Part shown: positions 7,976 through 55,720 of the stretch, in pieces
How positions within the stretch are numbered: the stretch's first letter is position 1
How the letters are laid out: every line of letters begins with the position of its first letter
NCBI RefSeq assembly: GCF_001194135.2
Contig: NC_068981.1
Span: forward strand, 126,989,097-127,053,096
Direction: 5' to 3'
Source: Octopus bimaculoides
Lineage: Eukaryota
Length of the DNA stretch: 64,000 bases
Notes under the pieces: generated by a model
Database searches by the model: none
What the model was told of the DNA's origin: nothing
Seen by the model: only the letters and a program-made list of their open reading frames with translations
Translations under genes and position numbers: made by a program

Positions 7976-8829
7976 AATGTATTAGATGATGTAATTAAAT
8001 ATTTTATAAACCAATTTCCCAGTTTTTTGGGGTTATTTCAGAATTTTTTTTTTCATAGGAACAGGGAAAGCTGTGTGGTTAAGAAGCTTGCTTTGCTAAC
8101 ACATGGCTTCGGGTTTAAGTTCCACTGTGCAGCACCATGAGCAAGTAACTTCTGTAGCCCCAAGCTAATCAAAGCCATATGAGTGAATTCGGTTGTTAGA
8201 AACTGTATGAAGCCTTTCAGTTATTATGCATTAAAAAATACTCTACGTTTGTATTGAGTCCTGTAATTTCTGGTAAATCAACAGAGATTTGTGTGTGTGT
8301 GTGTGAAGGCATGTGACCTAGTGGTTAGAGGTGTTGCACTCTCGATCATGATATCATGATTTCAATTCTCAAACCAGTTGTGTGTTGTGTTCTTGATCAA
8401 AACAATTTATTTCATGTTGCTCTAGTACACTCAGCTGTAAATGGGTAACCCCTGTGATGCACTGACCTTCTGATCAGGTGCAATGTTGGCCTGCTCCTCA
8501 CCTAGTCAGCAGGGTAGCATCATACTGTCATACACACACACACACACACACATATATGTGTGTGTTTGTGTTTTTCCCTCCCCCTTCACAATGCTTGACA
8601 AACGGTGGTGGTTTGTTTACATCCTTGTAACTTAGCAATTTGGCACAAGGAGACCAACAGAATAAATACCAGACTTTAAAAAAAATGAAAAAAAATTAGT
8701 ACTGGGGTTGATTTAGTCGACTAAAGCCCTTCAAGGCAGCGCTCCAGTATGGCCACAGTCCATGACTGAAACAAGCAAAAGTAAAAGATAACAGATGTAT
8801 CCTGTGATCCTTTTAACTATTTAAACCAC

Positions 8830-10122: not shown

Positions 10123-10680
10123 NNNNNNNNNNNNNNNNNNNNNNNNNNNNNNNNNNNNNNNNNNNNNNNNNNNNNNNNNNNNNNNNNGTACGCTAGGTAA
10201 GTGCTGTAACGGATTACTAGGGCTCCAAGGTTGTATCCAAGACGGTAGTTATAGAGCCATTGCAGACTTCTGATATAGCAGATACATAATTGTTAAAGAG
10301 GACAAACGTTAAACGTTTGTTGTCCTCTTTAACAATTATATATATGTATATCGGCATGGTGCTTTCTGTTTGTGTTTGTCCCCCATCCCTGCTTGACAAC
10401 TAGTGTTGGTTTGTTTATGTCCCCATAACTTAGTAGTTTGGCAAAAGAAACTGATAGAATAAGTACCAGGCTTAAAAAGTAAGTACTGAGATTGATTTGT
10501 TTGACTAAACCCTTCAAAATGGTGCTCTAACATGGTCGCAGTCCAAGGACTGTAAATGTAACATGCATGCATCCATCCATCCATGCATACATACATACAT
10601 ACACACACACATGCACATACATACATACGCACGTATCTGTGTGTGCGACCATAGAGATGTATACATTTTTTTTTTCTCAG

Positions 10681-15053: not shown

Positions 15054-15954
15054 GTATGTAATCACTACAGCAACAACAACAATGGTTCTGAGGATTCCTT
15101 GTTGTTTTGTTTTCTCTTTTTTCAATTTGCCTTTTACTTAGTTTTGCTTATCCTTCTTGATAGAGGGAAACCTTAGTGGCATGAGAATACTTACAGAGAG
15201 TGAGTAAAAGAGTCTACGTAAGATGAAGCTATTAAACTGTAAACAACACACATCTTTACCAAGCAATTTTGTCATTTTCACTGTTGGACTGACCAAAGCC
15301 TTGTGAGTGGATTTGGTAGATAGAAACTGAAAGAAGCCCATCATACATATATGTATATATCTATGTGTGTGTGTCTGTGTTTGTCCCCCACCACCACTTG
15401 ACAACCAGTGTTGATATGTCTAAGTTCTTGTAACTTAGTGGTTAGGCAAAAAGAGACCGATAGAATAAGTAATAAGCTTTTAAAAAATGAGCCCTGGAGT
15501 TGATTTGTTTGACTAAAACCCTTCAAGGTAGTTCCCCAGCATAGCTGCAGTCAAATGACTGAAACAAGTAAAAGATAAAAGATTATTTGTAAGAATCTCA
15601 GAAAAAATGCTTGGCATTATTTGTTCTCGCTTTTATGCTCAAAGTTCAGATCCTGCCAAGGTCTACTTTGCCTTTCATCCTTTTCAGTTCCATAAAATAA
15701 GGTACAAATCAAAGTCACAAACTGAGATCAATGTAATCAACTAAACCCNNNNNNNNNNNNNNNNNNNNNNNNNNNNNNNNNNNNNNNNNNNNNNNNNNNN
15801 NNNNAGTTTATAATTTTTAAAGTCTCTCTATTTATTAATTGCCACAGATTTCAATAAAAGAAATATCAATTGTATAACAAAGAACACAATTATTGTGAGT
15901 TCACAACTAGTGTATTTTTTCATGATTAAAGTTGGGATGTAGAGAGTGATGTTT

Positions 15955-18168: not shown

Positions 18169-20999
18169 AACACGCACACACATAGATATACACACATGTA
18201 CATACATGCATGTATGTCTTTGTGTGTGTTTTTATGACTGTGGTTGTCATTCCCGCCATCGTTTGACTACCATTGTTAGTTTGCTTACATACTTGTAACT
18301 TAGCAGTTTCACAAAAGTGACTGATAGAATAAGTACTAGACTTAAAATATATATATATAAGTACTAGGGGTGATGAATTTTGACAAAAACCCTTCAGGGC
18401 AATGCCCCAGTATGGCTGGTATCCAATGACTGAAACAAGTAAAAGATAAGAGATAATAGAAGTATGCAGTTACAAGATTCTGGTATAAAATCAAAAAGCT
18501 TGATTTTCTTGTTTTAATGCAATTTCAGCTTTATTAAATACATTACCAGCAGCTGAATGATTATACTTAAGCCCTGAGAATCTCTGAGTGGTTGGCGTTA
18601 GGAAGGGCATCCAGCTGTAGAAACTCTGCCAAATTAGATTGGAGCCTGGTGTAGCCATCCGGTTGCACGAGTCCTCAGTCAAATCGTCCAACCCATGCTA
18701 GCATGGAAAGCGGACGTTAAACGATGATGATGATGATGATGATGATATATATATATATATAGTTTCATTCATTAGACTGCGACCATGCTGGGGCACCACC
18801 TTGAGGGATTTTAGTCGAACTAATCAACCCCAGTACTTATCTCCTTTTAAACCTGGTACTTATTCTATTGGTTTTTTTTGCTGAACCACTAAGTTATGGG
18901 GATGTAAACACACCAACACTAGATGTCAAGCGGTGGTAGGGGTCAAACACAGACACAAAGATACACACACATATACATACGACAGGCTTTCTTCAGTTTC
19001 TATCTATCAAATCCACTCACAAGGTTTTGGTCAGCCCAAGGCTATAGTTGACAACACTTGCCCAGAGTACTGGTTTCAGGTTCAGTCCCATGTGGTTGGG
19101 AAGCAAACTTCTTTCTACACAGCCACACCTGCACCTATGTGTGTGTGTGTGTGATTTTGGTCCCAATCTAAAAAACATGTCAAACTGGTATTCTACAATT
19201 TCATCTTTAACCATTTCATTACCAACCTTCCTGACTGAGACTAACCTTGGCTTTATGAAACAAAATTACTCATATTTAAATCAAAATCTTCAATCATAAT
19301 TTTGTATAAAAATCATTTTGTTATACAACCAATGAGTCATTTTACTGAATCCCTCCAAATCCTTGATTAGTAGAAAAAGAAAAAAAAAGAAAAAAAAGGC
19401 ACAGGCAATGTGATTCATCAGAAATATGGTCTTGAAGAGGTTATGGGTTAATTAGGATATAAAATCACATTTTTATATATTGAAATCAAAATCTTTTTTA
19501 ATATATATAAAAGATATATAAAATCAATTCATAAAATATCAAACTTTGTTATTCTATTTAAAAAATAATAATTGGCTTGATCCTTTTCAGAATATATGCA
19601 ATAAGGCATTGAAGAAGTAAAATATTCATTCAGTATCACCACTTAATAAAAAGAATTTTAAATTTCCTTTATAATTGTATTTTTTCAGTATCTTATTGTT
19701 CACGACTCTGAACATCTAAAAAGGGGTTTCACCAAAGGTACTTTAGGTTTCACATAACTTCAATTTTTACAATAAAAAGGAGCTGGTAAGGCAGGTCCAA
19801 CAAGAGCAAAATATTGCAGCATCATTAAAAAAAAGTCCACAGAAAAACAATAAATTTTAATAGTTAGAATTTGACATTTAGATTGGTTTCATTTGGAGCC
19901 ATATGTCATATGTGTACACCTATAAGGTGTGCAAGATACAATACTTCACATCTGCATTCTGACTATTGCCTTTACATTCAACTATGTTATTGCATAAATG
20001 TGATAGCCAGAAGAATGTGAGAAACTGAGTATATATTTTGCATGCTTAATAGGTGTAAAGATATTGTGTATACACACTTATATGAAATGTGGCTGCAACT
20101 AAAACCAAAAGAAAAAAGCTTTGATGGAAAAGAGAGCTGTGAACATTGAAATCTGAGTAATAATCAAGATATTTAAATTATATTCATTTTAAAGAAATAA
20201 AATTGTTCAAGTATTTACATTTCAACTGACCCCTGTCTTTCAGTGAAGGTGAATTTCTTCAGAAACCACTTTGAGCAATGCTCAGATAATTTAGGCTTGA
20301 ACATTTTTGGATTTTCTAAGTTTAATTTTTCAGAATTGGATATATTTGTTGTTCAATTTCCTCAAAATCAAATGGTGTCACATTGAATGAATTAAAATGC
20401 AAAATCTTTATTACATATTTACTGGGTATGTAAAATAAATTTACTGAAACTGCTTTATAAAAAACAAAAAATTACAAGCAGTATATTTTCAAATATTTTA
20501 AAATAAGAAAGAAAAGATAAATAAAATAATCCAACACACCCACACTTTACAGGCACTGAGTTTAAGAAGCATGCTTCCCAACCACGTGGTTTTAAGGTTC
20601 AGTCCCACTGAATCCCATACATATATGAATAAATATATCTATATTCCACCGTCCTCTCTTCTGCAACCCCACTCTGTCAAGGTTCTTATCTTGGCCATTG
20701 TCATGAAAATATTACCCAATAAACTCTGTAAAGTGATTGGCACCAGGGAGGGCAGTACAACTCATGCCAGCATGGAAGACAACATTAAATGATGATGACA
20801 TACATACAGACAGACAGACACATATATCTAGATTTAGATATGTTTCAAGCCATGTCCAACTTAATAGCACCACCTGATAGAATCTGTTATGTCACTTTTA
20901 AGTCAAGATTTGTGGTATCATAGCCCATTCAAGTAAGCTGTTGATTGAAATGTATCCAGGTACTTTGGTTTGTTCAGTATTCTCTGACATAATTTGTCC

Positions 21000-31857: not shown

Positions 31858-31888
<31 letters not shown>

Positions 31889-32329
31889 NNNNNNNNNNNN
31901 NNNNNNNNNNNNNNNNNNNNNNNNNNNNNNNNNNNNNNNNNNNNNNNNNNNNNNNNNNNNNNNNNNNNNNNNNNNNNNNNNNNNNNNNNNNNNNNNNNNN
32001 NNNNNNNNNNNNNNNNNNNNNNNNNNNNNNNNNNNNNNNNNNNNNNNNNNNNNNNNNNNNNNNNNNNNNNNNNNNNNNNNNNNNNNNNNNNNNNNNNNNN
32101 NNNNNNNNNNNNNNNNNNNNNNNNNNNNNNNNNNNNNNNNNNNNNNNNNNNNNNNNNNNNNNNNNNNNNNNNNNNNNNNNNNNNNNNNNNNNNNNNNNNN
32201 NNNNNNNNNNNNNNNNNNNNNNNNNNNNNNNNNNNNNNNNNNNNNNNNNNNNNNNNNNNNNNNNNNNNNNNNNNNNNNNNNNNNNNNNNNNNNNTATATA
32301 TATATATATATAGACACACACACACACAT
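31738..32329. repeat. (TA)n/(CA)n microsatellite spanning a gap, representative of many such tracts
   Basis: Directly visible; similar tracts near 4805, 10085, 18130, 27530, 55730, 59350 and 61510. Confidence 0.9.
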
Positions 32330-32641: not shown

Positions 32642-35268
32642 TTAAGATTCAGAAACAGAAGCATTGCTAGATTGTTGCTGTTGTTGATCACTTTGAAAAG
32701 TGTTTTCTGAAAAGGCCACTGACTGATTAGCATCAATTTTAGGTCGGGGTTTGACTGCATGACCTGCAACAACAGTATTACTACTAGTTACAATAGTCAA
32801 AGGTTTCGAAGAAGTAATTGCTTTGCCAGCAGTAGTTACAACAGAAGAATAATTAGAAGCAGAAGCTATGCCTAAACTTTGTCCAAAATTTGAAATACCC
32901 GTGGAACCATCTGCTGAGATACCTGCCAAAGATAGTTTCCGTAATTCAGCTTGCGTCCGCTGCCCTGAATCTATGTTCAGTAAAGCAGCAATAGTGTTTA
33001 GACGTGGACGAGTGGGTGCTGTTGATGTTGATACTGCTGCTGCTGCTGAAATGTGGCTGGCAGCAGTAGAACTGTGGCTTGTTGACTGAGTTAAGGCAGT
33101 ACTGCTAGGAAGAGAAACACTACTCAAAGACAACTTGTGAAGATTAAGTTCTTGGGTGGGAAGTGATGGGAGTATTGATGCAGATGTTGCAGCTTCTGTT
33201 GCTGAAGACACTAGCATGTGCTGCAGTAAAGAGTTATTGGTTGCAACAGTGCTGACAACATCTGACTGCTGAGGTGTACTCATGGCACTACTTGAATTCT
33301 TCACAGAAGAAAATCCTAATAGCTTTTTATGAACTAACTGACTCTCTTTGCTGGTAGACTGAGAGATGGCAGCTCTAACTGCAGACAAAGAGGTGTTAAC
33401 TAAATCTAACGTTTGTTTATCATCTTTCTCATTGAGTTTTCTTTGTGCATCAAATTGCTGCACAGATTGCATCGGTGTCTTTTGGAGGAGAAGTTGTGAA
33501 ATTTGGTTGGTTGCCAGAGAGTTTACACCTGACTGCGGAGTAGTAATTGTATGTGTACTAGATACAATATTAGTTCCTGAATCAGTTGAAACAGTTTGTA
33601 AAGTATTCCAATTAACTCCAGAATTATAAGAAATGGATGAAGGCAATGACATTTCAGTCCCTTTAACAAATGCTACATTTGATTTATCAGTGACACCTGA
33701 TGAAAGATGACTTATTGCATTGGCATCTTTTCGTCCAGCGATGGAAGTTAAAATCATTTGTGCTTTCTCAGCAATAGCAACTGAATAAGGTGGAGGAGGC
33801 TTTCCAATTATTGCTGACTTTGGCATCATATATGATTGTGTAACAGCAGGATCACCTATTGACCCTGCATGGGATTGGGAGAAACCCACTGGAACAGATG
33901 ATTGGACTTTTGGGACACTGGAGTATTGCTGGGCAAGGGATACAATGTCTCCTTCTGAATGTTGAGAAAAACGTTCTTGGTTCTGAAGTGATGACAATTC
34001 TCTGGATTGTATTAAAGATGACAATGTTTGCTTTTCTTGTTGTGTCAGACTACTAAGGTCAAATGATCGCACCATAGACGACAATGTCAAACGTTCCCGA
34101 GTGGATGAAGGCGAAGGTTCATTTGCCTCAGATGCATTTTGATGAGGCACTTGTTTAGAGCTAGTTAAATTATTAACACCCTGAACCATAGAGCTTAGAG
34201 TGAATCGCTCTTGCTGAGCAACAGAAGTTTCACCACTGGTTTGCAATAAGTTCTGAGATAAAGTTCTGCTTTGTGGAGTTAGTAAAGTACCACCTTGACT
34301 GAGTGAAGTTGCTGTGGCGGTGGCACCACTGGAAGATTGACCAGACACAGCGACACTTCTTAACTGGTTTGCATTCAATTCCATAATTGTCTGTGATGAT
34401 AAATCTACTTCGCTACCGCTCGTTAGAGAAGACTTTCGGGTCAAAATTGGTCCTGACGATCCCGTTTGTGGAGTGGTGGCCTGTGTAAAAATGGAAAGTT
34501 TGTAATCTGGTGAGGAAATCTTATTTTGAGAAATTCCAAGAGTTTGTGCAGTGAGTACATCATCCTTGCGCAGAAGTGAAGATTGCTGTGTGCCAGCTGG
34601 AGGAGACTGTGATATAGAGGTGACAGGTGACAGGGCAATATTAGAAGGATTAGTTGAAGGAACATGGCTTCTTGAAGATAACTGATTGTGAAGAGTAGCA
34701 GCGTTAACCTGAGCAATATTTTGAGCTGAGCTGATAGGAATCTGAGTGTTGTGAAACAGAGTTTGGGTGGTGGGAGACTGAGTTGGCTGCGATTGAGATG
34801 TAAGCAATTGGTTAGCCTGTGTGGTCAGAGAAAGGGATTTTAATAACTGGGGGTGATTTGCTTGGTTTGCACGGGCTTTGGCTGCCTGAAAATACTGGCT
34901 AAGGCTGGCTCGGTTCATTTGTGACAAAGCTGCTTGTAAAGCTGAAGGAGCTCCTCTTGGCTTTGCTAACTGAACTGAGGCTGTGGCACTCAGCTGCAAC
35001 TTACTAGTGGGCTCTTGAGATGGTGACTGACTAACAGCTTGCTGGGGGATTGTCTGACCCATTAAGGCCTGTGGAGATGATTGACTAATGACAGCCTGGG
35101 GTGAAGCCTGACTAGATGGAGTCTGTGGAGATGCTTGACCTACTGATGCTTGTGGGGAGGGTTGGCTAAGGACTGACTGTGGGGAGGCCTGGCTTACTTG
35201 TGACTGGGGTGAACTTTGCCCTATTGGGGTTTGGTTTCCTATCTGAGCTTGCTGCTGTTGCTGTTGTT

Positions 35269-35299
<31 letters not shown>

Positions 35300-37803
35300 A
35301 AGAACTAACTGCTGAAGCTGTTGCAACTGCTGCTGCTGCTGCTGTTGCTGTAGCTGCTGTTGCTGCATTTGTTGTTGCTGTAGCTGCTGCTGTTGTAATT
35401 GCTGCAGTTGCTGCTGTTGTAGTGCCAGCTTCTGAGATGCTGCTTGATTTGCAAGCTGCTGGGCAACACGTTGCGGAGAGACAAACTGTCGTGTTTTCTG
35501 TTGTTTGATCAGTTGAGTAAGCTGTTGCGTTATCTGCTGCTGCATCACACTTTGCGACTGCTGCACACTGGACACCGGCTGACCAGCAACTTGAGATGTT
35601 TGTTGCTGCTGCTGCTGTTGTTGTTGTAATTGTTGTTGTAGCTGTTGTTGTTGCAGTTGTTGCTGCAATTGTTGTTGCTGTTGCAGTTGTTGTAGCTGCT
35701 GTAATTGATGTTGCTGCTGTTGTTGCTGCTGCTGTTGTTGCTGCTGCTGTTGTTGCTGTTGCTGCGACATTTGCTGCTGCGCTAAACTGAGTTTCAACTG
35801 TTGCTGACTGACAGTTTGTTGTTGATTTAAAGCTTGTATTAACTGTTGCTGCTGCTGTTGTTGCAATTGCTGCTGCTGTTGTTGCTGTTGTTGTTGTTGC
35901 TGTAATTGCTGCTGTTGCTGCAATTGCTGTTCCAATGAGGTCTGAGCCTGTAACTGGGAAGCCTGTATCACTTGTTGTGATGTCACTTGGGATCTTTGCT
36001 GCTGCTGCTGCTGCTGTTGCATTTGTTGCTGCTGCTGCTGTTGTTGTTGTTGTTGCTGTTGTTGTTGTTGTTGTTGAAGCAACTGGTTTATCTGCTGCTG
36101 AGTAGCCTGAGATAGTTGCTGTGGAGCAGACTGAGCCTTCTGTTGCAGCAGTCCCTGGCTAAGCTGGGCTTGTAGAGAACTAAAACTAGGCTGACTAGCT
36201 GCAGGTGATGCAGCATATGGAGAAGTTGGGGGAGCCCTTGGCTTACCTGAGGCTACATGTTTAGATTTGTCTGAACTTAACTTTGGTTTGCCTGAAGCAG
36301 CCTGGCGGGGTTTAGTAATCAAACCAGTCTGGGGTAGATTCTGTTGGACTACCCGGTGTGCAGAAGCCGTCTGAGCCATTGGATTGGACTGGAGTGTAAT
36401 TGGAGACAGAGCACCAGTTTGTAAAGGTGACGGAGCAGTTGAAGACAGTGGAGACTGGGCAGCAGTAGGGGATGGGACAGGTTGATTCATTGGGGACAGG
36501 GCCGGCTGCTGTAAAGGGGACATTGAGATTTGTGTCATGGGAGAATGTGTGTGCTGACTCATAGGGGACTGAGTGTGTTGACTCATTGGAGAGTGAATAG
36601 TTTGACTGATAGGTGACTGGGCAATAGGAGACATAACAGGATGAGCTATGGGTGATTGGACAGGTTTTGCCATGGGTGAATGAACAGGTTGAGGCATGGG
36701 TGAATGAACAGGCTGTGCCATAGGGGACTGTATGGATTGGATCAAAGGTGAGTGGGCAGGATGCATCATTGGTGATTGGACAGGTTGGTTCAAAGGTGAC
36801 TGAGCAGGAGATTGTACAGGTTGAGCCATAGGAGAATTAGCAAGATAGGATTGAGCTGCTCTGACCACAGAAGGCTGTTGTGCAACCTGGGCAGACTGAT
36901 GAGAGAAGAGGGAAATGCTAGATCGTGAAATACCTGCCACCGAATGAGCTGATTGAGTATTGCTGGCAAAGTGTGAAGCCTGAGTAGATACTGCAAGTGC
37001 AGTGGCAGAAAGAGGAGAGCTGGCAGGTGCACCAATAGGAGAAGTAGGAGCCAAAGTGGTGCTGGTGGTAGTAGTAATGCTGGTGGTAGTAGTAGTAGTA
37101 GAAGTAGTAGTAGTAGTAGTAGTGCTGTTACAGCTAGCATTAGCTGTAGTGGTACCAGATAGTGATTGTGGCACATTTTGTGGAAGAGAAACCCTTGGTT
37201 TATTAAAAAGAGTTATATTAGAGGGGTAAGAGCTTACCATTGGTTCAGTCATGAGAGCTTGGGTTAGAGGTGTGTACTTCGAGGGGCTGACGACAGCAGT
37301 GGTCATGGCTATAGACAAACCAGTGGATGACCCACTTGTCTTGATGGGGCTTTCCACTGATTCTGCTTGAGTCACTTCGGTCGCATTGAACTCAGCATCG
37401 CTTGGAAGTATGCTTTGAGGAACTTTAGTAACAGTGGATGTAGTCTGTGCAGCATTTTTCTCTGCACTCTGACCAGTTTGAGATTTGGGACTGGATAATG
37501 TACGAGGAGACGAGGAGGTGGAACGTAAAGGTGGAGTGTATTTAGAACTCAAGAGACGATTGTGTGAGCTCTTTGCTCCAACAGATCGAGGTGTACCTGG
37601 TGGTGTTATAGAAGGTGCATACTTTTCAGCAGACATTGGCGTTCGAGGTGATGAGAAAAAACGTCCACCTGCTGATCCTCGAGCAGACTTTGGGGTACCT
37701 TTCTTTCGCTGGTCCTTTGTAGCTTCAGTGGCTTTCCTTTGTCGATTAAGATCGTCAAGTACTTTATCCATTCTGGCAACTCTCTTTTTGCCTTTTGATG
37801 AAC
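32642..37803 (-). CDS. PAGR1: PAGR1-like exon 4: end of PAGR1 core (GSSKGKKRVARMDKVLDDLNRQRK) plus ~1700-aa S/T/P/Q-rich tail
   Basis: ttttctcaatccAG acceptor at 37805-37804, phase 1. 5162 nt open to TAA at 32644-32642. Matches human PAGR1 TPGSS..KREARLDKVLSDMKRHKK. AATAAA candidates on - at 32492-32497 and 32385-32390. Confidence 0.88.
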
Positions 37804-38362
37804 CTGGATTGAGAAAAAAAATACCCATGAGAAAATGATAAAGACAAAAAATATAATACAATTTATTTTTCTATTTTATTGTCAAGATATTCCAGAGATG
37901 AATGCTCACCACCTAATAAACTGAAAAAATTCTGAGCAATGTCCACAACCATTTGTTCTATTCTGCATGTATCACTACTAAACACTCCAACCTTACAGAC
38001 TACATATCAAAGTTTTCTTATGGTCACAATACATCCTAAAATCACCTTAGTATGACTAAATACAGAACGAGATCATAGCATAGGTGAGACCATTTCATAT
38101 ATTCAATGTATTTGGTTAATAATCTGCTTTCCAGACCATTATATTTATATTGCTGAGACTGTACGCCTTCACTTAAATTTTTCTTTTTGCTGCTACTTTG
38201 GATCTATAATGCCATGCGAGTGCAGGTGCAATAGTTTATTTGTTGAAGAAACTGTTTTTCTATTTGGATGTCTTTCCTACTACTAACCACAAATATCAGG
38301 TGAGTGTTAAAAGTATATTTTTAGCAGTCAGGGAAACCAGAGCAAGGAATTAAGTATCATAG

Positions 38363-38755
38363 TTGTTGTTGTTGCTGGCACTCCGTCACTTACGACGCCG
38401 AGGGTTCCAGTTGACCCGATCAACGGAACAGCCTGCTCGTGAAATTAACGTGCAAGTGGCTGAGCACTCCACAGACACGTGTACCCTTAACGTAGTTCTC
38501 GGGGATATTCAGTGTGACACAGTGTGACAAGGCTGACCCTTTGAATTACAGGCACAACAGAAACAGGAAGTAAGAGTGAGAGAAAGTTGTGGTGAAAGAG
38601 TACAGCAGGGTTCCCGACCATCCCCTGCCGGAGCCTCGTGGAGCTTTTAGGTGTTTTCGCTCAATAAACACTCACAACGCCTAGTCTGGGAATCGAAACC
38701 GCGATCCTATGCCCGCGAGTCCGCTGCCCTAACCACTGGGCCATTGCACCTCCAC
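38363..38755 (-). mobile_element. tRNA-headed SINE, family C (other copies 51131-51492+, 51690-52046+)
   Basis: GGAGGTGCAATGGCCCAGTGGTTAGGGCAGCGGACTCGC...GGTTTCGATTCCCAGAC head and (CAA)n tail. Confidence 0.85.
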
Positions 38756-41220: not shown

Positions 41221-41603
41221 GGCACAGGAGTGGCTGTGTGGTAAGTAGCTTGCTTACCAACCACATGGTTCCGGGTTCATTCTCACTTCATGGCACCTTG
41301 GGCAAGTGTCTTCTACTATAGCCTCGGGCCGACCAAAGCCTTGTGAGTGGATTTGGTAGACGGAAACTGAAAGAAGCCCGTCGTATATATGTATGTGTGG
41401 TATGTGTGTCTGTGTCCTCCTAACATCGCTTGACAACCGATGGTGGTGTGTTTAGGTCCCCGTAACTTAGCGGTTCGGCAAAAGAGACCGATTGAATAAG
41501 TACTAGGCAGCCAAAGAATAAGTCCTGGGGTCGATTTGCTTGACTAAAAGGTGGTGCTCCAGCATGGCCGCAGTCAAATGGCTGAAATAAGTGAAAGAGT
41601 AAA
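41221..41603 (+). mobile_element. tRNA-headed SINE, family A, full length (other copies 8060-8800, 10340-10560, 15280-15580, 18060-18450, 18760-19135-, 26545-26880, 42290-42460-, 45980-46270-, 55050-55230-, 55785-55920-)
   Basis: TGGCTGTGTGGTAAGTAGCTTGCTT..GGTTC head, internal (TA/TG)n tract, conserved GCATGGCCGCAGTCAAATGACTGAAACAAGTAAAAG tail. Confidence 0.88.
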
Positions 41604-43995: not shown

Positions 43996-44936
43996 ATAGA
44001 CAGACGATCTTCACAAAAGTTTTGTAAAGAGAGTTGAATATGCTTTGCTGAGGAGATCTAATACCAGTGAAACATGTCTGTTGCTTTCACCAGTCGGCTT
44101 TAGTAACAAAATGTATTGCCATCTGCATTCGGGATCACATGTAAAATCAAGTCACATGAAGCAAACTTAACCACAGCCATAACTGTGCCTGCCATATAAA
44201 CATTGTAAAATAATTTATTATAATGTTTTACCACTTCTACCAACTCACTATGCTATTTAATTTTACAATAAAAATAAAGTGAAATAAAATTTAAAAAGAC
44301 AGCATAAGTCCACTACCAACCAACTGAATAGCAAAAGTCTGAAATTCAAGGAAACTAGTGATTGTCTGTGTTGGTGACAATTAGTCTGCAGGCGAGTTCT
44401 TGAAAGAGTTTGATAATTTCAATTGCTGTAAGGAATAAATTCCCAGATGAAACCATTCTGGAATTTACTTCAACTTAATCTGAGAAAGAGTCAATGAGGA
44501 AGTCTCTATGCCAGCCAGTAAAGGAACCTTTACACAATCACAGCTTTTAGAAATAAGAAATCATCATCATCATTATTAAACATGTTTTCCATACTGGTAT
44601 GGTTGTATGATTTAACAAGAGATGGTAAGCCAGAGGATTGTGCCAAGCTCCAATGTCTGCTTTGGCATGGTTTCAACCGCTGGAACATTTCCTAATGCCA
44701 ACCACTTTACAGAGTGTATGATGTTTTTTTACATAGCATTAGCACTAGGAAATCTACTTCAAATTACATGCCCATCTTAAAGAAAGGAAAAGAAAAGGAG
44801 AGGATGGTCACAGTTGGATAACCTTTGCTCATAAGTCTGCACAATCAGGCCTGACCTGGAGCTCAACAACAACTACTTACCTGATCCTACAAACACACAC
44901 ATATATACATTCATGCAGTAAAACTATCTTGCTTAC

Positions 44937-45249
44937 TTTTTTTCCTCTTTGTGTTCTTCTATTTTCTGTTCCACAACTAACTTCTGTTCTATGTCCATAT
45001 CTTCATCCTCTTTCTCCACCTCAGGTGGCCTGCGACCAGGACATTTCCATTTAAGAACTGGTAAGCCACCATTGTCCAGTTTCTCAAACATTTCAGCAAC
45101 TTGATCCGGATAAGGGATCCAGAGGCCCTGGAAGACATTATTTGCATTGTATTTCTCATCGTCACTCACATCAACATCAATAATGTCTTCTTCGTCCTCT
45201 ACACGAGAACTCATTTTCCTCACCATCTGGGAAGATTTGGGGGAATTAG
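44937..45249 (-). CDS. PAGR1: PAGR1-like exon 2 (ANSPKSSQMVRKMSSRVEDEED..LWIPYPDQVAEMFEKL..PGRRPP..EEK)
   Basis: Strong polypyrimidine/AG acceptor at 45251-45250, GTAAGC donor at 44936, 313 nt. W.P.P..I..LYE.L and RRP pattern of PAGR1. Alternative starts at ATG 45226 or 45214. Confidence 0.88.
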
Positions 45250-46447
45250 CTAAAAAGAATAAAAAGAAAAAGAAAATAAACAATAGTAAAATTCTAAGAG
45301 GACATTTCTGTGTATTTAAAACATTCATTTTGTTTCTTTTTACATTTAACAAATTAGTTTTAAGGTTAAGAATGTTGGAATACTATATTCACATTCTTCG
45401 CAGAGCATTGTGATCTGCCTTAAGGCAAAGCATGTAACTCAGCTTGCCTCAATTTGTTACTCTTAATTCACTGACAATAAGTTAGCGAATCATCATCATC
45501 ATCATCGTCATTTAACGTCCGCTTTCCATGCTAGCATGGGTTGGACGATTTAACAGAGGACTGGTGAAACCAGATGGCTACACCAGGCTCCAATCTGATT
45601 TGGCAGAGTTTCTACAGCTGGATGCCCTTCCTAACGCCAACTACTCCGAGAGTGTAGTGGGTGCTTTTACGTGCCACCGGCCCGAAGGCCAGTCAGGCGG
45701 TACTGGCAATGGCCATGCTCAAAATGGTGTATTTTACGTGCCACCTGCACAGGAACCAGTTCGGCAGCACTGGCAATGATCTCACTCGAATGTCTTTACA
45801 CGTGCCAGAAAAAGATATCCACTACAAAAATAATTTCATCAATGATATACAAATAATATTCAAATAAGAATAAAATATTCCATTCCCACTTTAGTATAGA
45901 TCAACAAAGGTAAAATTCAGTGCAAAAAAAAAGAAAAGAAAAAAAATCTTAAATCTTTTTTATCATCTATCTTTTATTTGTTTCAGTTATTGGACAGCAG
46001 CCATACAAGGACACCACCTTTCAAGGCAGTTTTTAGTCAATCAGTCTCTTTTGTGAAACTGATAAATTACAGGGACATAAACAAACCAACACCATTTATC
46101 TATCAGTTGGGGGACAGACAACAAAGACAGACATACATAGGTATGTACATACACACTCACAGATATGTACACATGCACACATATATATATTATATGACAG
46201 GCTTTTTCAGATTCCATCTAGCAAATCCATACGCAAGACCTTGGTTGGCTAGGAGCTACAGTAGAAAAAACTTGCACTGAACCTATGTATGTTGAAAAAT
46301 TCTATAAATTCAAACATTTGTTCAGTTGTTTGGATATTACTTATAGCTTGGATATAGGACTGATAATGGCAGCTAGATTATAAATAAATACAAAAAAGAA
46401 AAGAAAAGAAAAACATACTACAAGACACATTCCTGCTTGTGAGATAT

Positions 46448-46677
46448 TGTTACGATCAGACAAATTAATAATGTAAGAAAAAGGGGTAAACTTCTGATTG
46501 TAACAACAAAGTGTTCAAACAGGGAAGTAAATGTTCATATATGGAGATTGGTCTAGGGGTATGATTTTCGCTTGGGTTGCGAGAGGTCCCGGGTTCGTAT
46601 CCCGGACGAGCCCCCAATTTGTTACGATCAGACAAATTAATAATGTAAGAAAAAGGGGTAAACTTCTGATCGTAACA
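46448..46677 (-). mobile_element. 230-bp mini-LTR (TRIM-like) element with 58-bp terminal direct repeats and a tRNA-Pro PBS
   Basis: Repeats 46448-46505 and 46620-46677 (57 of 58 identical), each TG..CA with a 13-bp terminal inverted repeat. ATAT on both flanks (46444-46447, 46678-46681). On -: CA-AAT-TGGGGGCTCGTCCGGGAT. Confidence 0.85.
46548..46616 (+). pseudogene. Retro-copied mature tRNA-Pro (positions 7-76 including CCA); not a functional tRNA gene
   Basis: TTGGTCTAGGGGTATGATTTTCGCTTGGGTTGCGAGAGGTCCCGGGTTCGTATCCCGGACGAGCCCCCA. Lacks acceptor-stem bases 1-6, has an encoded CCA, and shows G34, T37 and T58. Confidence 0.88.
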
Positions 46678-47442
46678 ATATTTTAACCATGCCTAATACT
46701 GCCTTGATCCAATCACCTCTTTCTTGAGAAGGAACATTTGTATAGAAATTAGTTCAAAGCAAATTCAAAGTTATTCCCTGTTTTCCAAAATTTGCACCCA
46801 AAAGAAAACCTGTTCAGTAGCTAGAGAATATAATACTAAAACCAGAACTTGATAGCTGACAGAATAGTCAATTACTACAGCAGGTATGGCTATGTGAATA
46901 AGACATATAATTTCACAATCATATTGTTCTCATCAAGCTTTTCAATTTTGCATTAGAATGAACTCTCAAAATCATTTTCAAAGACCTACTGGAAATCTAA
47001 TTTCTAATCTATGATATAGAAATGGGCCAAAGTGCTAGAAAGTCATAGTGAAAACAAATTTCTTTATGGTGTTTAGCTACAAACTAGATCTGATCAAACA
47101 GATGTCCTAGTTGTGACCATCCAATTTTTTGCGTGTCAAGGATTACACAGTTGAATGTATCATTCAATACTGAAATCTATGGAGATATGAAGGGAGAATT
47201 GACTGCTATTTCTACCAAATCAAATGCCTGCATAAAGGCTCCCTTGTTGGCTACTACAGATAGTAAAAATAAAGTTGTCATTAGTAAATCTTTAAACAAA
47301 GTTTGGCAAGTAAACTTTCAAACTACCTGAGTATTCTAGGTCAACCGTTACATAGCAATAAACCCAAGGTTGGGAGCTACTAATAAAATGACTTGGAAAT
47401 ACTACACTGCAGATCCATGCCATAACATAAAAAAACGATGAT

Positions 47443-47881
47443 TTAACTCTTTAGCATTTTAACCAGCCATATCTGCCCAAATAATCTGGTCTTGTGTTCA
47501 AACTTCCCTGATCTGTATCTCACTCTTACCTAAAATGTCATTCTAAAAAGTGTAATCACATCATCGAAATTTTGAAACGATAAAATGATACATGATTAAC
47601 TCAAAACAATGTGGATAAATAAGAATTATATTTGATAGAATAATATGAATTTAGAAGGGTTAACTTTTTAGCATTTGGATTTCTGTCAAATGTAATGCTT
47701 ATTTATTCAGTTTTGAATTTACCCTGCATTATCTTGTAGCCTTGAGATTTCATGATGTGATTATTTATTTCTTAGACTGACATTATAGTGTAGGTGTGAG
47801 AGGCTGAACCTGGCCAGTTTGAACATAAAACAGGTAGAATATTTTGGCTGGATATGGCCAGTTTAAATGCAAAAGGGTTAA
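47443..47881. mobile_element. Two TTAA-flanked piggyBac-like MITEs in inverted orientation sharing a central TTAA (third copy 49972-50182)
   Basis: TTAA at 47443, 47660 and 47878; C(C/T)(C/T)TT..AAGGG ends; internal similarity among the three copies. Confidence 0.75.
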
Positions 47882-51031: not shown

Positions 51032-53169
51032 TAGTTAAAAAAGGAACAGAATTTACAATCTGCTTTGAACATGAATGTGAGAGCTAAGATTTGAGTTTAA
51101 GCATGTTTGTTTGAGAAGGGTTACTGTATACCGGAGGCGCAATGGCCCAGTGGTTAGGGCAGTGGACTCACGGTTTCGATTCCCAGACCGGGCATTGTGA
51201 GTGTTTATTGAGAGAAAACACCTAAAGCTCCACGAGGCTCCGGCAGGGGATGGTGGCGAACCCTGCTGTACTCTTCCACCACAACTTTCTCTCACTCTTA
51301 CTTCCTGTTTCTGTTGTGCCTGTAATTCAAGGCAGTGGACTCGCGGTTTCGATTCCCAGATCGGGCATTGTGAGTGTTTATTGAGAGAAAACACCTAAAG
51401 CTCCACGAGGCTCCAGCAGGGGATGGTGGCGAACCCTGCTGTACAACTTTCTCTCACTCTTACTTCCTGTTTCTGTTGTGCCTGTAATTCAANNNNNNNN
51501 NNNNNNNNNNNNNNNNNNNNNNNNNNNNNNNNNNNNNNNNNNNNNNNNNNNNNNNNNNNNNNNNNNNNNNNNNNNNNNNNNNNNNNNNNNNNNNNNNNNN
51601 NNNNNNNNNNNNNNNNNNNNNNNNNNNNNNNNNNNNNNNNNNNNNNNNNNNNNNNNNNNNNNNNNNNNNNNNNNNNNNNNNNNNNNNNNCGGAGGCGCAA
51701 TGGCCCAGTGGTTAGGGCAGTGGACTCACGGTTTCGATTCCCAGACCGGGCATTGTGAGTGTTTATTGAGAGAAAACACCTAAAGCTCCACGAGGCTCCA
51801 GCAGGGGATGGTGGCGAACCCTGCTGTACAACTTTCTCTCACTCTTACTTCCTGTTTCTGTTGTGCCTGTAATTCAAAGGATCAGTCTTGTCACACTGTG
51901 TCACGCTGAATATCTCCGAGAACTACGTTAAGGGTACACATGTCTGTGGAGTGCTCAGCCACTTGCATGTTAATTTCACAAGCAGGCTGTTCCGTTGATC
52001 GGATCGACTGGAACCCACAACATCGTAAGCGACGGAGTGCCAACAAACACTGTATACCATTCAGTACAACCAATAAAATTTATAGAGTGAAGACACACAA
52101 GGGTACATCCATACAATTGCTCAATCTGCTAAAAGTAACAGCCAAACTACCTTCAAATCACAATATACCAACTTACAAAAGGAAGAACAGATTAGACAAT
52201 GTAATCCCTGATATACAAAAAGTTGCCATGATATATGGAAGAAATGTTTTTCAACATGAGTCTGCTTGGTCAGGTTTTGACCAGAAGGATCAGCAGTAAT
52301 CTTTAGGTTTTAAAAGCACCATTCAAGCGTTGGACCTCATGGAGGCAGTGACAGGTGATCAAGACCTTTAGCAATATATCAAGCTTATGTAGATCTGTCA
52401 AGCCAAGTGATATCGTAGTCATGGTCGATGCTGGTGTCATGCCAGTGGTACGTAAAAAGCACCTACAACACTCTTGGAGTGGTTGGCATTAGGAAAGGCA
52501 TCTGGCCGTAGAAACCTTGCCAATTCAGATTGGAGCCTGTGCAGCTCCCTGGCTTACCAGTTTCCAGTCAAACTGTCCAAACTATGCTGGCATGGAAAAC
52601 AGATATTAAATGATGATGATGATATATCTAGAAGTGGGTGGAGCTGAATTATCAATTTAAGACAGAAAAAGATTTATGAAAACACTTCAAGAATACCTTT
52701 TTTCTTTTATTATTAAATGTACAAGACCTTTGTGAAATGTGGCTACAGAAAAGACAAAGACTTTTTCACTTATAGTGATAGCAACTGAACTCTCAATGAA
52801 TATATACTTGCTAAAATCCCCTATATTGTGTCCAAGAAGAATTTTCTAGTAGTGGTGACCACAATAGATACAACCTAATCTTTCGTTCAATTTTAGGTTC
52901 ATAAATTTAAAGCACTGCTCAATCAAAATCTTATTTTCCCCTTGTAAACCTTATATCAGATACAAAGGGATCTTCCAGTTTAAAGGGATCTAGAATGAAG
53001 CTACTCTTCACAAGTACACATATTGTTGATAAGGGTAGAGGAAAACCAAAGTGGTAGTTTATACAAATGCCAAATCAGAGATAAGATGCTATATGATCGA
53101 AGCACTACAAACAATATCTTACTGAACCAGTGGGCCTAATTTATCATCATTTAGCATGTTTTTCGATGC

Positions 53170-53570: not shown

Positions 53571-55720
53571 ACTATGCTCTCTCCCCCTCTCTTCTATATA
53601 TATCATCATCATCATTGTTGTTTAACGTCCGCTTTCCATGCTAGCATGGGTTGGACGATTTGACTGAGGACTGGTGAAACCAGATGGCTACACCAGGCTC
53701 CAATCTGATTTGGCAGAGTTTCTACAGCTGGATGCCCTTCCTAACGCCAACCACTCCGAGAGTGTAGTGGGTGCTTTTACGTGCCACCGGCACAAAGGCC
53801 AGTCAGGCAGTACTGGCAACGGCCACACTCAAAATGGTGTATTTTACATGCCACCTGCACAGGAGCCAGTCCAGTGGCACTGGCAACGATCTCGCTCGAA
53901 TGTCTTTACACGTGCAACCGGCACAAGTGCCAGGAAGGCGACACTGGGCACAGGTGCCATCACAATTTCGCTTTCGCTAGCCCCAACAGGTCTTTGCAAG
54001 CCGAGTTTCGTGTCCAAAGAAGGAGACAACGTTGGCATGGGTCGAATTTAGTTTGATTTCGATTTCACTTGCCTTAACAGGTCTTCGCAAGCGAAATTTA
54101 GTGTCCAATGAAGGAAGGTACGCATACACACACTTCATCAAATGTCTAGGGTTTTTTTCCACACTAGCACAGGTTTGAACAGATTTATTTGGGCATAGGA
54201 CTGTATGGCCAAATTCTCTTCTCATTGCCAGGCCACAACCCTTGAGGTGAAAATAGTAGAACTAGTAAAACAATAAAAGTATCTCCTATATGATGTCCTT
54301 GGTCATCAATGACAAACAAACATTATATTATTATTATCATATGGTGGTTTAGCTGGCAGAATCATTAGCATGCCATGCAAAATGCTTAGCAGCATTTAAT
54401 CTGTCTTTACATTCATTCTGAGTTCAAATTCCACTGAGGTTGACTTTGCCTTTCATCCTTTCGGGGTTGATAAAATAACTCACTGTACTAAGTGACCTCA
54501 GTTACATACTGAAGTCACTGAGTACTAGGTTGATGTAATCGACTTCCCCATCCCCGAAATTGCTGGCCTTGGGGCAAAATTCGAAACCATTATTATTATC
54601 ATTAATATATGCACACATATGTATAAAAAATGTATCACTTAACATAAATTAATTATGAATAGTGACATAGAGTTAGATTAATGAATTCATGAATTCTGAG
54701 ACAAATGACAATCAGGAAAAGGAAGGTTGCTAATTAACTACTGTCAAAACTTTGGGTATGCAAGAGATAATATGGGAGCACCAGCAGGTCTTTGTAGTAG
54801 ATGTAGTGATTAGCAGTAACAGTGTCCTTGAAATGAATTCTTTTAAGTGTATGGAAAGACCCTTAAAACAGAAATTAATAGCATCAGTGATCTAATCAGC
54901 AGAGGAGGGATGGATGTTCTGAAAGCAAAATAACGAAAGTAAGAACAGAGCAGAAAAACTTCAAGAACCTATTACTTATGCTGACAACAAAAGGAATCTC
55001 ATCTGAGTAAAAATGCAGATTTTATGATACTTAACTTTTATTTGTTTCAGTCATTAGACTGTGGCCATGCTGGGGCATTGCCTTGAAGAATTTTAGTTGA
55101 ATAAATCGACCCCAGTACTTATTTTTTTGTAAAGCCTGGTACTTTTTATATCAATTTCTTTTGCTGGACTGCTAAGTTACAGGGACAATCACATCAATAC
55201 CAGTTATAAAGTGGTGGTAAGTGACAGACACAAAGACACTAAGAACTTTCGAGCGAGATCGTTGCCAGTGCTCCTGAAATGGCTCTTGTGCAGGTGGCAC
55301 ATAAAATACACCATTTTGAGCACGGCCGTTGCCAGTACCGCCTGACTGGCCTTCGTGCCGGTGGTCCGTAAAAGCACCCACTACACTCTCAGAGTGGTTG
55401 GCGTTAGGAAGGGCATCCAGCTGTAGAAACTCTGCCAAATCAGATTGGAGCCTGGTGTAGCCATCTGGTTTCACCAGTCCTCAGTCAAATTGTCCAACCC
55501 ATGCTAGCATGGAAAGCGGATGTTAAACGACGATGATGATGATATATATAAAGTAAATATATATACCGAAGTAAGCACATAAATGTGAAACAAGGTGGGG
55601 AAAAAATAGTACTCGAATACTATTTCACGTTCCCATTCGTCAGACAGACAAACAGGAATATGAAACTCTGAGTAGCAGTTTTTTGTGATATTCTTGCAGC
55701 TTTAATAATAATAAAGTGTG

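Follow-up and report, generated by a model that had tools for sequence, protein, structure and literature searches.

A 230-bp Octopus bimaculoides insert with a reverse-transcribed tRNA-Pro between two 58-bp terminal repeats

Layout of the insert and its terminal repeats

Within the window, by which we mean the whole 64-kb stretch of Octopus bimaculoides DNA that was analysed, a 230-bp insert flanked by ATAT raises the question of how a copy of a tRNA came to lie between two short direct repeats and by which route the whole unit entered the chromosome. Re-reading of 46444-46681 returned, correct in every detail, the layout that an earlier note had proposed, namely ATAT, a 58-bp repeat, 42 bp, tRNA-Pro positions 7-76, ATT, a second 58-bp repeat and ATAT:

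46444..46447, no strand: left copy (ATAT) of the 4-bp flanking duplication, from sequence reading and repeat search
46448..46505, minus strand: 58-bp terminal repeat copy 1, the downstream "3' LTR" in minus-strand sense, with TG..CA ends and the TG variant at 46500
46506..46547, minus strand: 42-bp spacer at the place expected for a polypurine tract on the minus strand, not purine-rich
46548..46616, plus strand: reverse-transcribed copy of mature tRNA-Pro(IGG), positions 7-76 including CCA, from the Rfam match, an exact 18-mer and 64/69 identity
46617..46619, no strand: 3-nt linker joining the repeat to the CCA end of the tRNA, ATT on plus and AAT on minus
46620..46677, minus strand: 58-bp terminal repeat copy 2, the upstream "5' LTR" in minus-strand sense, with CG kept at both termini
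46678..46681, no strand: right copy (ATAT) of the 4-bp flanking duplication

The two direct repeats are 57/58 identical and run from TGTTA to TAACA; a repeat search measures 60 nt at 98% identity, the 58 nt being extended by a coincident base at either side. Their sole difference is T at 46500 against C at 46672, the single CG-to-TG change that had been claimed before, and the tract that the same note had placed inside each repeat on the opposite strand is indeed found on the plus strand (AAGAAAAAGGGG at 46475-46486, repeated inside copy 2). Each copy has inverted termini of 13-14 nt (TGTTACGATCAGA / TCTGATYGTAACA) and a hairpin, with a 13-bp stem and z = -2.5 in copy 1 and z = -5.8 in copy 2. 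A 26-mer from the repeat occurs twice in the 64 kb, both times within these repeats (expected 0), and the window holds neither a second copy of the element nor a solo repeat. By eye, nothing recognisable as a promoter, a polyadenylation signal or another U3/R/U5 signature is present in the 58 bp, and the 42-bp spacer has no significant match elsewhere in the window and no Rfam family.

The target, as reconstructed, would read CTTGTGAG-ATAT-TTTAACCATG, with the core GAG-ATAT-TTTAACC. Given the composition of the window, two 4-mers at the flanks would agree by chance with a probability of 0.0055-0.0073; ATAT being palindromic, this arrangement is indistinguishable from 60-bp units flanked by a TA duplication, or from an outer inverted repeat of 17 nt, and the exact boundary is ambiguous to that extent. 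The TG..CA ends, together with a 4-bp duplication around the pair and none around either copy, support the view that the repeat pair behaves as one inserted unit. Two independent MITE insertions were rejected, since no duplication of 2, 3 or 4 bp surrounds either copy by itself, and a tandem repeat or satellite with a 172-bp period was rejected with only 1.34 units present and boundaries that match the TG..CA unit.

The tRNA copy and its position beside the repeat

The segment between the spacer and the linker resembles a proline tRNA that has lost its 5' end. The Rfam tRNA model matches 46548-46606 with 26.3 bits (E=0.0026), short of the gathering score of 29, and ARAGORN calls no tRNA, as expected for a copy without the tRNA 5' end. 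Aligned without gaps from position 7 to what we take to be the animal tRNA-Pro(AGG) sequence plus CCA, a reference with indirect support from the antisense-tRNA open reading frames described below, the segment agrees at 64/69 positions, with tRNA positions 1-6 unmatched. The changes lie at canonical positions 27, 34, 37, 57 and 58, with T and G standing in place of the canonical C27 and A57; the divergence between the repeats would lead one to expect ~0.6 changes over 69 nt, far fewer than these five, of which three coincide with the five classical reverse-transcription-signature positions (p=0.0018). The anticodon reads GGG, the invariant A58 is T, and the 3' terminal CCA is present, which, to our knowledge, eukaryotic tRNA genes do not encode. 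Pro-GGG genes are absent in eukaryotes, and inosine-34 of tRNA-Pro-AGG is converted to G in cDNA (PMC8062790); m1A58 is the usual stop of retroviral reverse transcriptase on tRNA-Pro (PMC8599865). Because the segment combines CCA, a GGG anticodon of the kind produced from inosine-34 and T58, its bases support an origin as a reverse transcript of mature tRNA-Pro rather than of a tRNA gene. The G37-to-T change is perhaps no modification scar, given that human tRNA-Pro-AGG shows no misincorporation at G37 (PMC8062790).

A tRNA gene or a SINE head was rejected because the segment ends in CCA, has GGG as its anticodon and T at 58, and lacks a 5' end; a Dada-type or other tRNA-gene-targeting insertion was likewise rejected, the tRNA part not being a gene. 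The copy also lies outside the definition of a tRNA-derived SINE, since it is 5'-truncated, CCA-ended and tailless, unlike the (GAT)n-tailed SINEs of the window, and it would be a poor polymerase III gene because its 5' end is missing and a T occupies box B position 58.

The 18-mer TGGGGGCTCGTCCGGGAT occurs once in the 64 kb (expected 0), on the minus strand at 46599-46616, where it forms an 18/18 complement of the tRNA-Pro 3' end (46616-46599) in the correct polarity, 3 nt inside the repeat end ...GTAACA. The minus-strand junction reads repeat-AAT-TGGGGGCTCG (CA-AAT-TGG), so the CCA end of the tRNA stands 3 nt from the inner end of the repeat, which is the exact geometry of a primer-binding site, and on this strand the tRNA copy amounts to a binding site extended to 69 nt. 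We thus confirm the earlier description of AAT followed by an 18-nt tRNA-Pro site with complementarity running on for 69 nt, and equally the claim that no polypurine tract precedes the 3' repeat on this strand, where the last 11 nt before the downstream repeat read GAACACTTTGT (context ...CCCTGTTTGAACACTTTGT). The plus strand was rejected as the sense of the element, since on it copy 1 is not followed by a binding site, nor is copy 2 preceded by a purine tract. A resemblance to a tRNA-Lys binding site in the spacer, of 8 nt, is within chance.

Routes to the insertion

The repeats, their ends, the flanking duplication and the junction geometry can be read from the DNA itself, as can, from its bases, the RNA origin of the tRNA copy. 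The account that we favour, and to which we give slightly better than even chances, holds that reverse transcription went astray, copying its primer tRNA-Pro(IGG) as far as position 7, and that an integrase-type reaction inserted the resulting DNA. We infer both the role of the tRNA as primer and the order of the steps. In this mechanism, a mature tRNA-Pro, from a gene with the anticodon AGG and carrying inosine at 34, would prime DNA synthesis on a template RNA with the order 58-nt unit, AAU and 18-nt tRNA-Pro binding site. The tRNA would remain joined to the new DNA and then serve as a template itself, with copying going past the usual stop at methylated A58 and reaching tRNA position 7. In the resulting double-stranded product, a 58-bp unit would stand at either end and the interior would consist solely of the tRNA copy and 42 bp, presumably filler, a layout that would correspond to the region around a two-LTR junction with the primer tRNA retained and not to a shrunken full-length element. 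The TG..CA ends would be joined to the chromosome at the ATAT site, probably by an LTR-retrotransposon-type integrase rather than a related transposase, creating the 4-bp duplication. Copying of the primer tRNA beyond position 58, an idea already raised in the earlier note, is the most economical reading because one inserted unit holds a mature tRNA-Pro reverse transcript exactly at the primer's place. We take the insert to be a one-off or very low-copy by-product and not a replicating family, as the polypurine tract needed to prime its own second strand is missing, and the 1/58 divergence between the repeats, against 8-16% between species, predicts an empty site in a relative. Several points weigh against this account. 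The simplest route, a template switch to the region just upstream of the parent 3' LTR, is contradicted by the absence of a polypurine tract; the two free, correctly ended termini of a junction-type product and the 42-bp spacer are left unexplained; the 58-bp repeats would be LTRs shorter than any described; and products of read-through are commonly regarded as incapable of finishing synthesis and integrating (PMC8599865).

Searches for relatives covered nucleotide and protein collections. The termini with a variable gap, the junction of repeat end and binding site, and the repeat core gave 0 matches in metagenome, viral and prokaryote contigs, which are collections without animal genomes. An exact look-up of 10 spurious reading frames across the element found none on record, a word-indexed protein search with a 56-aa frame gave no candidate, and a six-frame query of 45950-47450 returned 2239 word candidates, none with E<=10. 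A HMMER scan of a 75-aa open frame against 1.84 billion representatives gave 273 hits; in the 12 of these that were inspected, the match was confined to the antisense-tRNA stretch, the frames being spurious ones that cross ordinary tRNA-Pro genes or arrays, and repeat or spacer flanks were absent from all 12. Three Logan contigs (L001-L003) match the window piecewise at 84-92% identity and end at window position 45947; the 58-bp unit is absent from all relative loci retrieved, with these contigs ending ~500 bp before the insertion site.

It is unlikely, in our estimate, that the insert instead represents an undescribed, replicating family of the smallest LTR retroelements, non-autonomous units of 230 bp with 58-bp LTRs that would have been born when a primer tRNA-Pro entered the element, would keep the fossil tRNA as a 69-nt binding site, and would replicate without a canonical polypurine tract through mobilisation by a Gypsy-like partner. 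Such a family would account for the TG..CA direct repeats, the 4-bp flanking duplication and the exact binding site that lies inside the upstream repeat at a distance of 3 nt, and the near-identical repeats suggest a recent insertion. A polypurine tract inside the downstream repeat is missing, however, and the TRIM-like classification offered in the earlier note fails on this defining feature of LTR retrotransposons and TRIMs. Very small LTR elements that insert near genes do exist, the smallest reported being 292 bp with 85-bp LTRs (SMART, FRetro129; PMC3281118); the 58-bp repeats are shorter than any described LTR. SMART is similarly non-coding, with TGT..ACA terminal direct repeats, a short duplication, a tRNA-complementary site at the upstream repeat and a location near a gene, but it has a 122-bp interior, a 5-bp duplication and many copies (PMC3281118), whereas the insert of 230 bp, with its 58-bp repeats, has no polypurine tract and an interior that is mostly tRNA copy. 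Molluscs also possess tRNA-related TRIMs, in the form of Helenus (TRIMp3; Kojima 2024), small LTR-type elements with tRNA-like sequence that occur in bivalves, have 4-bp duplications in their animal members and use a tRNA-Pro primer in some (PMC10886601). In Helenus, the tRNA-like part lies within each LTR, is derived from a SINE or gene and keeps its polymerase III boxes as a promoter, and the elements, of 311-1263 bp, have both a binding site and a polypurine tract (PMC10886601); here, in contrast, the repeats hold no tRNA-like sequence and hence no A and B boxes, and the tRNA copy occupies the interior, where it runs antisense to the element, is unbroken with the binding site, ends in CCA and is truncated at its 5' end. 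That truncation, with raw copying scars such as T58, is what a fresh by-product would show, and the lack of a second copy or solo repeat within 64 kb and of evident regulatory signals in the 58-bp repeats also counts against a family.

The hallmarks that the earlier note had called Gypsy-type, TG..CA, the 4-bp duplication and CA-AAT-TGG, are all present but are not specific to Gypsy, since the ends and the duplication are shared with Ginger DNA transposons (PMC2836005), whose end motif is TGTNR (PMC2836005). It is conceivable, though improbable, that two miniature 58-bp elements of a Ginger2-like, integrase-related cut-and-paste transposon moved together and carried a captured tRNA cDNA. Ginger2/Tdd (Bao, Kapitonov and Jurka 2010, PMC2836005) resembles the insert in its TGTNR termini, its 4-bp duplication and an AT-rich palindromic target. 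Its preferred target is RTATAY, and the insert, with TGTTA ends, lies in G-ATAT-T; GAG-ATAT-TTT conforms to R-ATAT-Y, similar in kind though not TATA. The 13-nt inverted termini and MITE-like hairpin of each unit fit as well, and no polypurine tract would be required. True Ginger2 terminal repeats, however, are 50-180 bp long and inverted, not direct, and Ginger2/Tdd encodes a transposase and moves as DNA (PMC2836005), whereas the insert has long direct repeats, inverted sequence of only 13-17 nt and a reverse-transcript interior. Remnants of the units' own duplications are missing at both inner ends, and neither a transposase nor a further copy is known. A composite of this kind would also leave unexplained why a tRNA reverse transcript ending in CCA stands in primer polarity 3 nt from the unit end: the chance of this placement alone is ~0.13 once a tRNA piece is present, and capture of such a piece is a priori very improbable.

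We give still less credence to a LINE-dependent route, in which mature tRNA-Pro and 42 nt from a second template would have been copied into a pre-existing 58-bp unit, as in a "tailless" tRNA retropseudogene; nicks at the two borders of the unit would then duplicate the whole of it as an unusually long target-site duplication. Schmitz et al. in 2004 reportedly described mammalian tRNA retropseudogenes that are CCA-ended and truncated and have no poly(A), and these resemble the insert in that reverse transcription fixed a mature CCA-ended or truncated tRNA in the genome. The order of repeat, 5'-truncated RNA copy, 3' end and repeat is indeed that of a target-primed insertion, the window is rich in LINE-dependent SINEs with (GAT)n tails, and the direct repeat of 60 nt extends one base beyond the TG..CA unit on each side. 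The insert has the tailless, truncated tRNA copy, but the short duplication (about 7-20 bp) that would directly flank it is replaced by a repeat of 58-60 bp with structured TG..CA ends, far beyond the usual range, and the tRNA is preceded on its 5' side by 42 extra bp. The two nicks would need to match, within a base, the ends of a TG..CA unit with inverted termini, no tail or microsatellite is present, and the exact CA-N3-TGG geometry would be coincidental. The one SINE insertion in the window with a comparable empty site (n=1) shows no long or clear duplication, which argues against the LINE route. Least credible, in our judgement, is that the 172-bp duplication is an assembly artefact, produced, for example, by the presence of two haplotypes or by wrong joining of a repeat in a short-read assembly with many gaps. 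Several N runs in the window mark the assembly as fragmented and the one-base difference between the repeats is allele-like, but the interval between the copies is unique, the layout of CCA, linker and repeat is coherent, the nearest gaps are ~5 kb (51.4 kb) and ~14 kb (32.3 kb) away, and misassembly would not produce matching ATAT flanks and primer geometry.

Precedents and significance

If the insert is the by-product of primer-tRNA read-through that we favour, its closest precedent is a clone of circular retroviral DNA in which a tRNA copy lacking 4 nt at its 5' end separates the two LTRs (Colicelli and Goff 1986, as summarised in PMC12220202). A reverse-transcribed tRNA-Gly with CCA and 5 nt missing has been reported adjacent to a provirus (Gurgo and Franchini 2025, PMC12220202). 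As far as that source presents them, these cases share with the insert the order LTR, short linker, complement of mature tRNA from the CCA end and next LTR, the loss of 5' nucleotides (4 in the circle and 5 beside the provirus, against 6 here) and the interpretation that an unremoved primer tRNA was copied by reverse transcriptase (PMC12220202). They are, as described there, non-integrated circles, or somatic events with a non-cognate tRNA-Gly in infected cultured cells (PMC12220202), whereas the insert is chromosomal and duplication-flanked in an invertebrate-type genome, only 230 bp long with 58-bp repeats and an extra 42 bp, and has a tRNA that exactly matches the binding site. The earlier remark that no element of this architecture had been described needs qualification in this light: a tRNA between LTRs is on record for unintegrated circular retroviral DNA, as summarised in PMC12220202, and tRNA-bearing TRIMs are known, but with the tRNA inside the LTRs (Helenus, PMC10886601).

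Primer-tRNA copies that extend beyond methylated A58 have been described as dead ends that are not completed or integrated (PMC8599865), and until now, in the cases that PMC12220202 summarises, read-through products were known solely from circles that had not integrated or from infected cells in culture. An insert of LTR, tRNA and LTR that sits in the germline between flanking duplications would, if our reading is true, indicate that such products can reach chromosomes in nature and that ~58 bp of terminal sequence suffices for integrase-type insertion. The insert also preserves a readout of tRNA modification (inosine-34 and m1A58) in an invertebrate. A tRNA joined to LTR-end sequence in a genome further bears on an old idea about the origin of SINEs, the "strong-stop DNA" model that Ohshima, Koishi and Okada are said to have put forward in 1993, in which tRNA-derived SINEs arise from a primer tRNA joined to LTR-end sequence. 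The chimera reportedly envisaged in that model is exactly the tRNA-ATT-repeat junction of the insert, which could conceivably be a living example of the tRNA-plus-LTR-end chimeras proposed as a source of tRNA-derived SINEs; we know of no SINE family derived from such a copy. If the insert did belong to a family, this would be the smallest LTR retroelement known, and if it is single-copy, it would be instructive as a molecular fossil but matter little to the genome beyond its proximity to a gene. The insert lies ~1.1 kb upstream of the first coding exon of a PAGR1-like gene.

Layout of the insert and its repeats

The insert, a 230-bp interval inside ATAT flanks, is real and structurally unusual, and re-reading together with a repeat search bears out in full the repeats, flanks and tRNA-Pro piece that the earlier note had described. 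In the plus-strand reading it is composed as follows.

From 46444, plus-strand reading: left flank, ATAT
46448-46505, plus-strand reading: 58-bp unit, copy 1
46506-46547, plus-strand reading: 42-bp spacer, after copy 1
46548-46616, plus-strand reading: tRNA-Pro-like stretch
Between the tRNA-Pro-like stretch and copy 2, plus-strand reading: linker, ATT
46620-46677, plus-strand reading: 58-bp unit, copy 2
To 46681, plus-strand reading: right flank, ATAT

The units differ by a single CG-to-TG change (T at 46500, C at 46672), and each starts with TGTTACGATCAGA and ends in its complement, which gives it TG..CA ends and 13-nt inverted termini. Folded as single-stranded DNA, each unit forms a hairpin whose stem measures 13 bp (intact copy, z = -5.8). 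Because ATAT is palindromic, the outer inverted repeat stretches to 17 nt in the repeat search, and a 4-bp duplication with 58-bp units is formally inseparable from a TA duplication with 60-bp units. For window sequence, two 4-mers agree by chance with a probability of 0.0055-0.0073. Neither unit alone is bordered by a duplication of its own of 2, 3 or 4 bp; copy 1 lies between ATAT and ACAA and copy 2 between AATT and ATAT, with matching flanks only at the outer sides of the pair. The units were mobilised, or produced, jointly as a pair. The 64-kb window holds no further copy of the unit, even in a low-stringency search.

The minus-strand order is unit, AAT, complement of the tRNA-Pro 3' end, 42 nt and unit. 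This complement is exact over 18 nt and pairing extends to tRNA position 7, while the repeat-end CA, three bases and TGG are spaced as is usual for a primer-binding site behind an upstream LTR. The final 11 nt ahead of the downstream unit on this strand are GAACACTTTGT, and a polypurine tract is thus absent; the purine run placed by the earlier note within the repeats on the opposite strand, AAGAAAAAGGGG, is indeed there and has no role in the minus-strand orientation. As the plus-strand reading offers neither binding site nor purine tract, the sense strand of the element is the minus strand.

A reverse transcript of mature tRNA-Pro

The Rfam tRNA model matches 46548-46606 (model positions 7-64, 26.3 bits, E=0.0026) slightly below its gathering score, and ARAGORN predicts no tRNA in the stretch, as expected of a copy that lacks the 5' half of its acceptor stem. 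The known tRNA-Pro primer site independently establishes the 3' 18 nt of our reference, the animal cytoplasmic tRNA-Pro(AGG) with CCA, and the reference body agrees with antisense-tRNA reading frames recovered in protein searches. From position 7 up to and including the terminal A, 64 of the 69 nt in the stretch are identical to this reference; positions 1-6 find no match.

Four features demonstrate that the piece is a reverse transcript of the mature tRNA: its CCA, its GGG anticodon, the T at A58 and the non-random placement of its changes. CCA is present at the end of the piece and is not encoded by eukaryotic tRNA genes. Genes for tRNA-Pro-GGG are absent from eukaryotes, and the inosine-34 of tRNA-Pro-AGG, a gene-encoded A, gives G in cDNA (PMC8062790). 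The T replaces an invariant A58 that is N1-methylated in tRNA-Pro and is the usual halting point of retroviral reverse transcriptase (PMC8599865, PMC11251516). Of the five changes, those at 34, 37 and 58 hit three of the five classical cDNA-signature positions (p=0.0018), and the total of five against the 0.6 expected from repeat divergence, as a measure of insert age, represents an ~8-fold excess. Since G37 of human tRNA-Pro-AGG shows no misincorporation (PMC8062790), the T at 37 may have arisen by ordinary mutation rather than as a modification scar; the changes at 27 and 57 may be the host species' own tRNA sequence.

In the tRNA copy, box A is still close to consensus and box B has a single mismatch, the T at position 58 (region 46537-46684). 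The first downstream TTTT (46681-46684) lies immediately outside the element, so that a polymerase III transcript spanning the tRNA copy and repeat copy 2 is conceivable.

Origin of the insert

Primer tRNA still joined to the first DNA strand is a template for the second strand, which leaves a tRNA copy beside the LTR end; copying usually ends after 18 nt, at m1A58, and copying past this base adds tRNA sequence to give a product that reportedly neither completes strand transfer nor integrates (PMC8599865, PMC11251516). A closely similar layout is documented: cloned circular retroviral DNA has been found with an LTR, a reverse-transcribed tRNA without four 5' bases and the next LTR, ascribed to a primer retained and copied, and a provirus-adjoining retro-tRNA has CCA and misses five 5' bases (PMC12220202); the tRNA of the insert misses six. 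Based on these layouts, we take the insert to be a junction-type product of primer read-through, and an integrated by-product of tRNA-Pro-primed reverse transcription is, with moderate confidence, its best explanation. The insert itself shows its ends, its duplication and the junction, and that the tRNA copy derives from RNA. As we infer the primer use, order of events, enzyme and filler source, a retained tRNA-Pro primer would itself have been copied beyond m1A58, yielding on the minus strand repeat, linker, primer copy, 42 bp of filler and repeat, and integrase would have joined the TG..CA ends of this product to the chromosome, creating the 4-bp duplication. This leaves unexplained the two free correct ends, the origin of the 42 bp and a 58-bp repeat serving as LTR.

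A replicating mini-family of such elements would display hallmarks identical to those behind the by-product reading, but we consider it unlikely, as the purine tract and a second copy within the window are absent and the copying scars in the tRNA piece are still raw. Unlikely to the same degree is a composite in which two miniature elements derive from a cut-and-paste transposon with an integrase-related enzyme. In Ginger elements the ends carry a TGTNR motif, and Ginger2 inserts into AT-rich palindromes of the form RTATAY with a 4-bp duplication (PMC2836005); the insert has TGTTA ends and a G-ATAT-T target, similar in kind to RTATAY but without its TATA. The long terminal repeats, however, are inverted in Ginger2 and direct here, and the primer-like position of a CCA-ended tRNA cDNA would be left to chance (~0.13 for placement alone, times the small probability that such a piece was captured in the first place).

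That a LINE made a tailless tRNA retropseudogene and duplicated a pre-existing unit would require both nicks exactly at the unit borders and an atypical duplication of 58-60 bp, and the one SINE insertion whose empty site is known, at 45491-45808 in comparison with a related-species contig (L001), is itself without a clear duplication; we therefore hold this to be quite improbable, even though the polarity is consistent and the SINE load makes LINE activity obvious. Least credible is an assembly artefact, which we judge very improbable: the assembly is rich in gaps, but within this interval the sequence is unique and its layout coherent.

The insert works like an LTR-type insertion, with TG..CA-ended direct repeats, a short duplication and a binding site; because the polypurine tract is missing, we do not class it as a TRIM. 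Even the smallest LTR retrotransposon described so far (292 bp, 85-bp LTRs) is larger than the insert with its 230 bp and 58-bp repeats. We rejected a Helenus element, in which the tRNA-like part lies inside the LTRs, a purine tract is present and the length is 311-1263 bp.

Pattern scans of metagenome, viral and prokaryote contigs (collections without animal genomes), and exact and homology protein searches with the element's reading frames, returned nothing relevant; copies elsewhere in the genome would make the insert of much greater interest. The unit is not present in the related-species contigs, which stop ~500 bp short of the insert. With repeat divergence at 1/58 against 8-16% between the window and the related species, an empty site is predicted at this position in that species.

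Surroundings in the window

The window belongs to an animal genome, is rich in AT and contains assembly gaps and many (GAT)n-ended SINEs, a pattern that may resemble that of cephalopod genomes. The insert lies ~1.1 kb upstream of the first coding exon of a PAGR1-like gene.

44933-45352, minus strand: PAGR1-like gene, first coding exon, PAXIP1_C domain
32642-37861, minus strand: PAGR1-like gene, 1739-codon open exon, PAXIP1_C domain continuing at its start
45491-45808, minus strand: 318-bp SINE, (GAT)n tail, missing from colinear related-species contigs L001-L003 (L001 146-148)
15968-16193, 18518-18743, 22519-22687, 39467-39716 and, besides these, 52455-52632, 53602-53908, 55240-55547, among others: copies of the CCCATGCTAGCATGGAAAGCGGACGTTAAACGA-core SINE
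8569-8679, 10343-10477, 15372-15451, 18237-18347, 18845-18979, 41404-41514: copies of the TTGACAAC-core repeat
1182-1870, ~10124, 31870-32312, 51.4-51.7 kb, ~55775: N runs (assembly gaps)

The N runs are often edged by TA or CA microsatellites, and this fragmentary assembly bears on trust in any local duplication. Around one N gap a 162-bp segment occurs three times, 78-99% identical (51158-51877), with a related inverted copy at 38372-38647; here a repeat may have been collapsed or wrongly assembled. At the junctions of the 318-bp SINE the target-site duplication is not clear and a few empty-site bases are lost. The abundant SINE family (~220-300 bp) combines a conserved ...CCCATGCTAGCATGGAAAGCGGACGTTAAACGA core with a (GAT)n tail in at least 8 copies on both strands at 60-95% identity, which may point to a cephalopod-type genome. 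A second short interspersed family, with core TTGACAAC..GTAACTTAGCGGTTCGGCAAAAGAGACCGAT.GAATAAGTAC, occurs in both orientations. The 1739-codon exon encodes an extremely high proportion of glutamine, serine and proline and contains 24-bp periodic repeats at 36613-36844.
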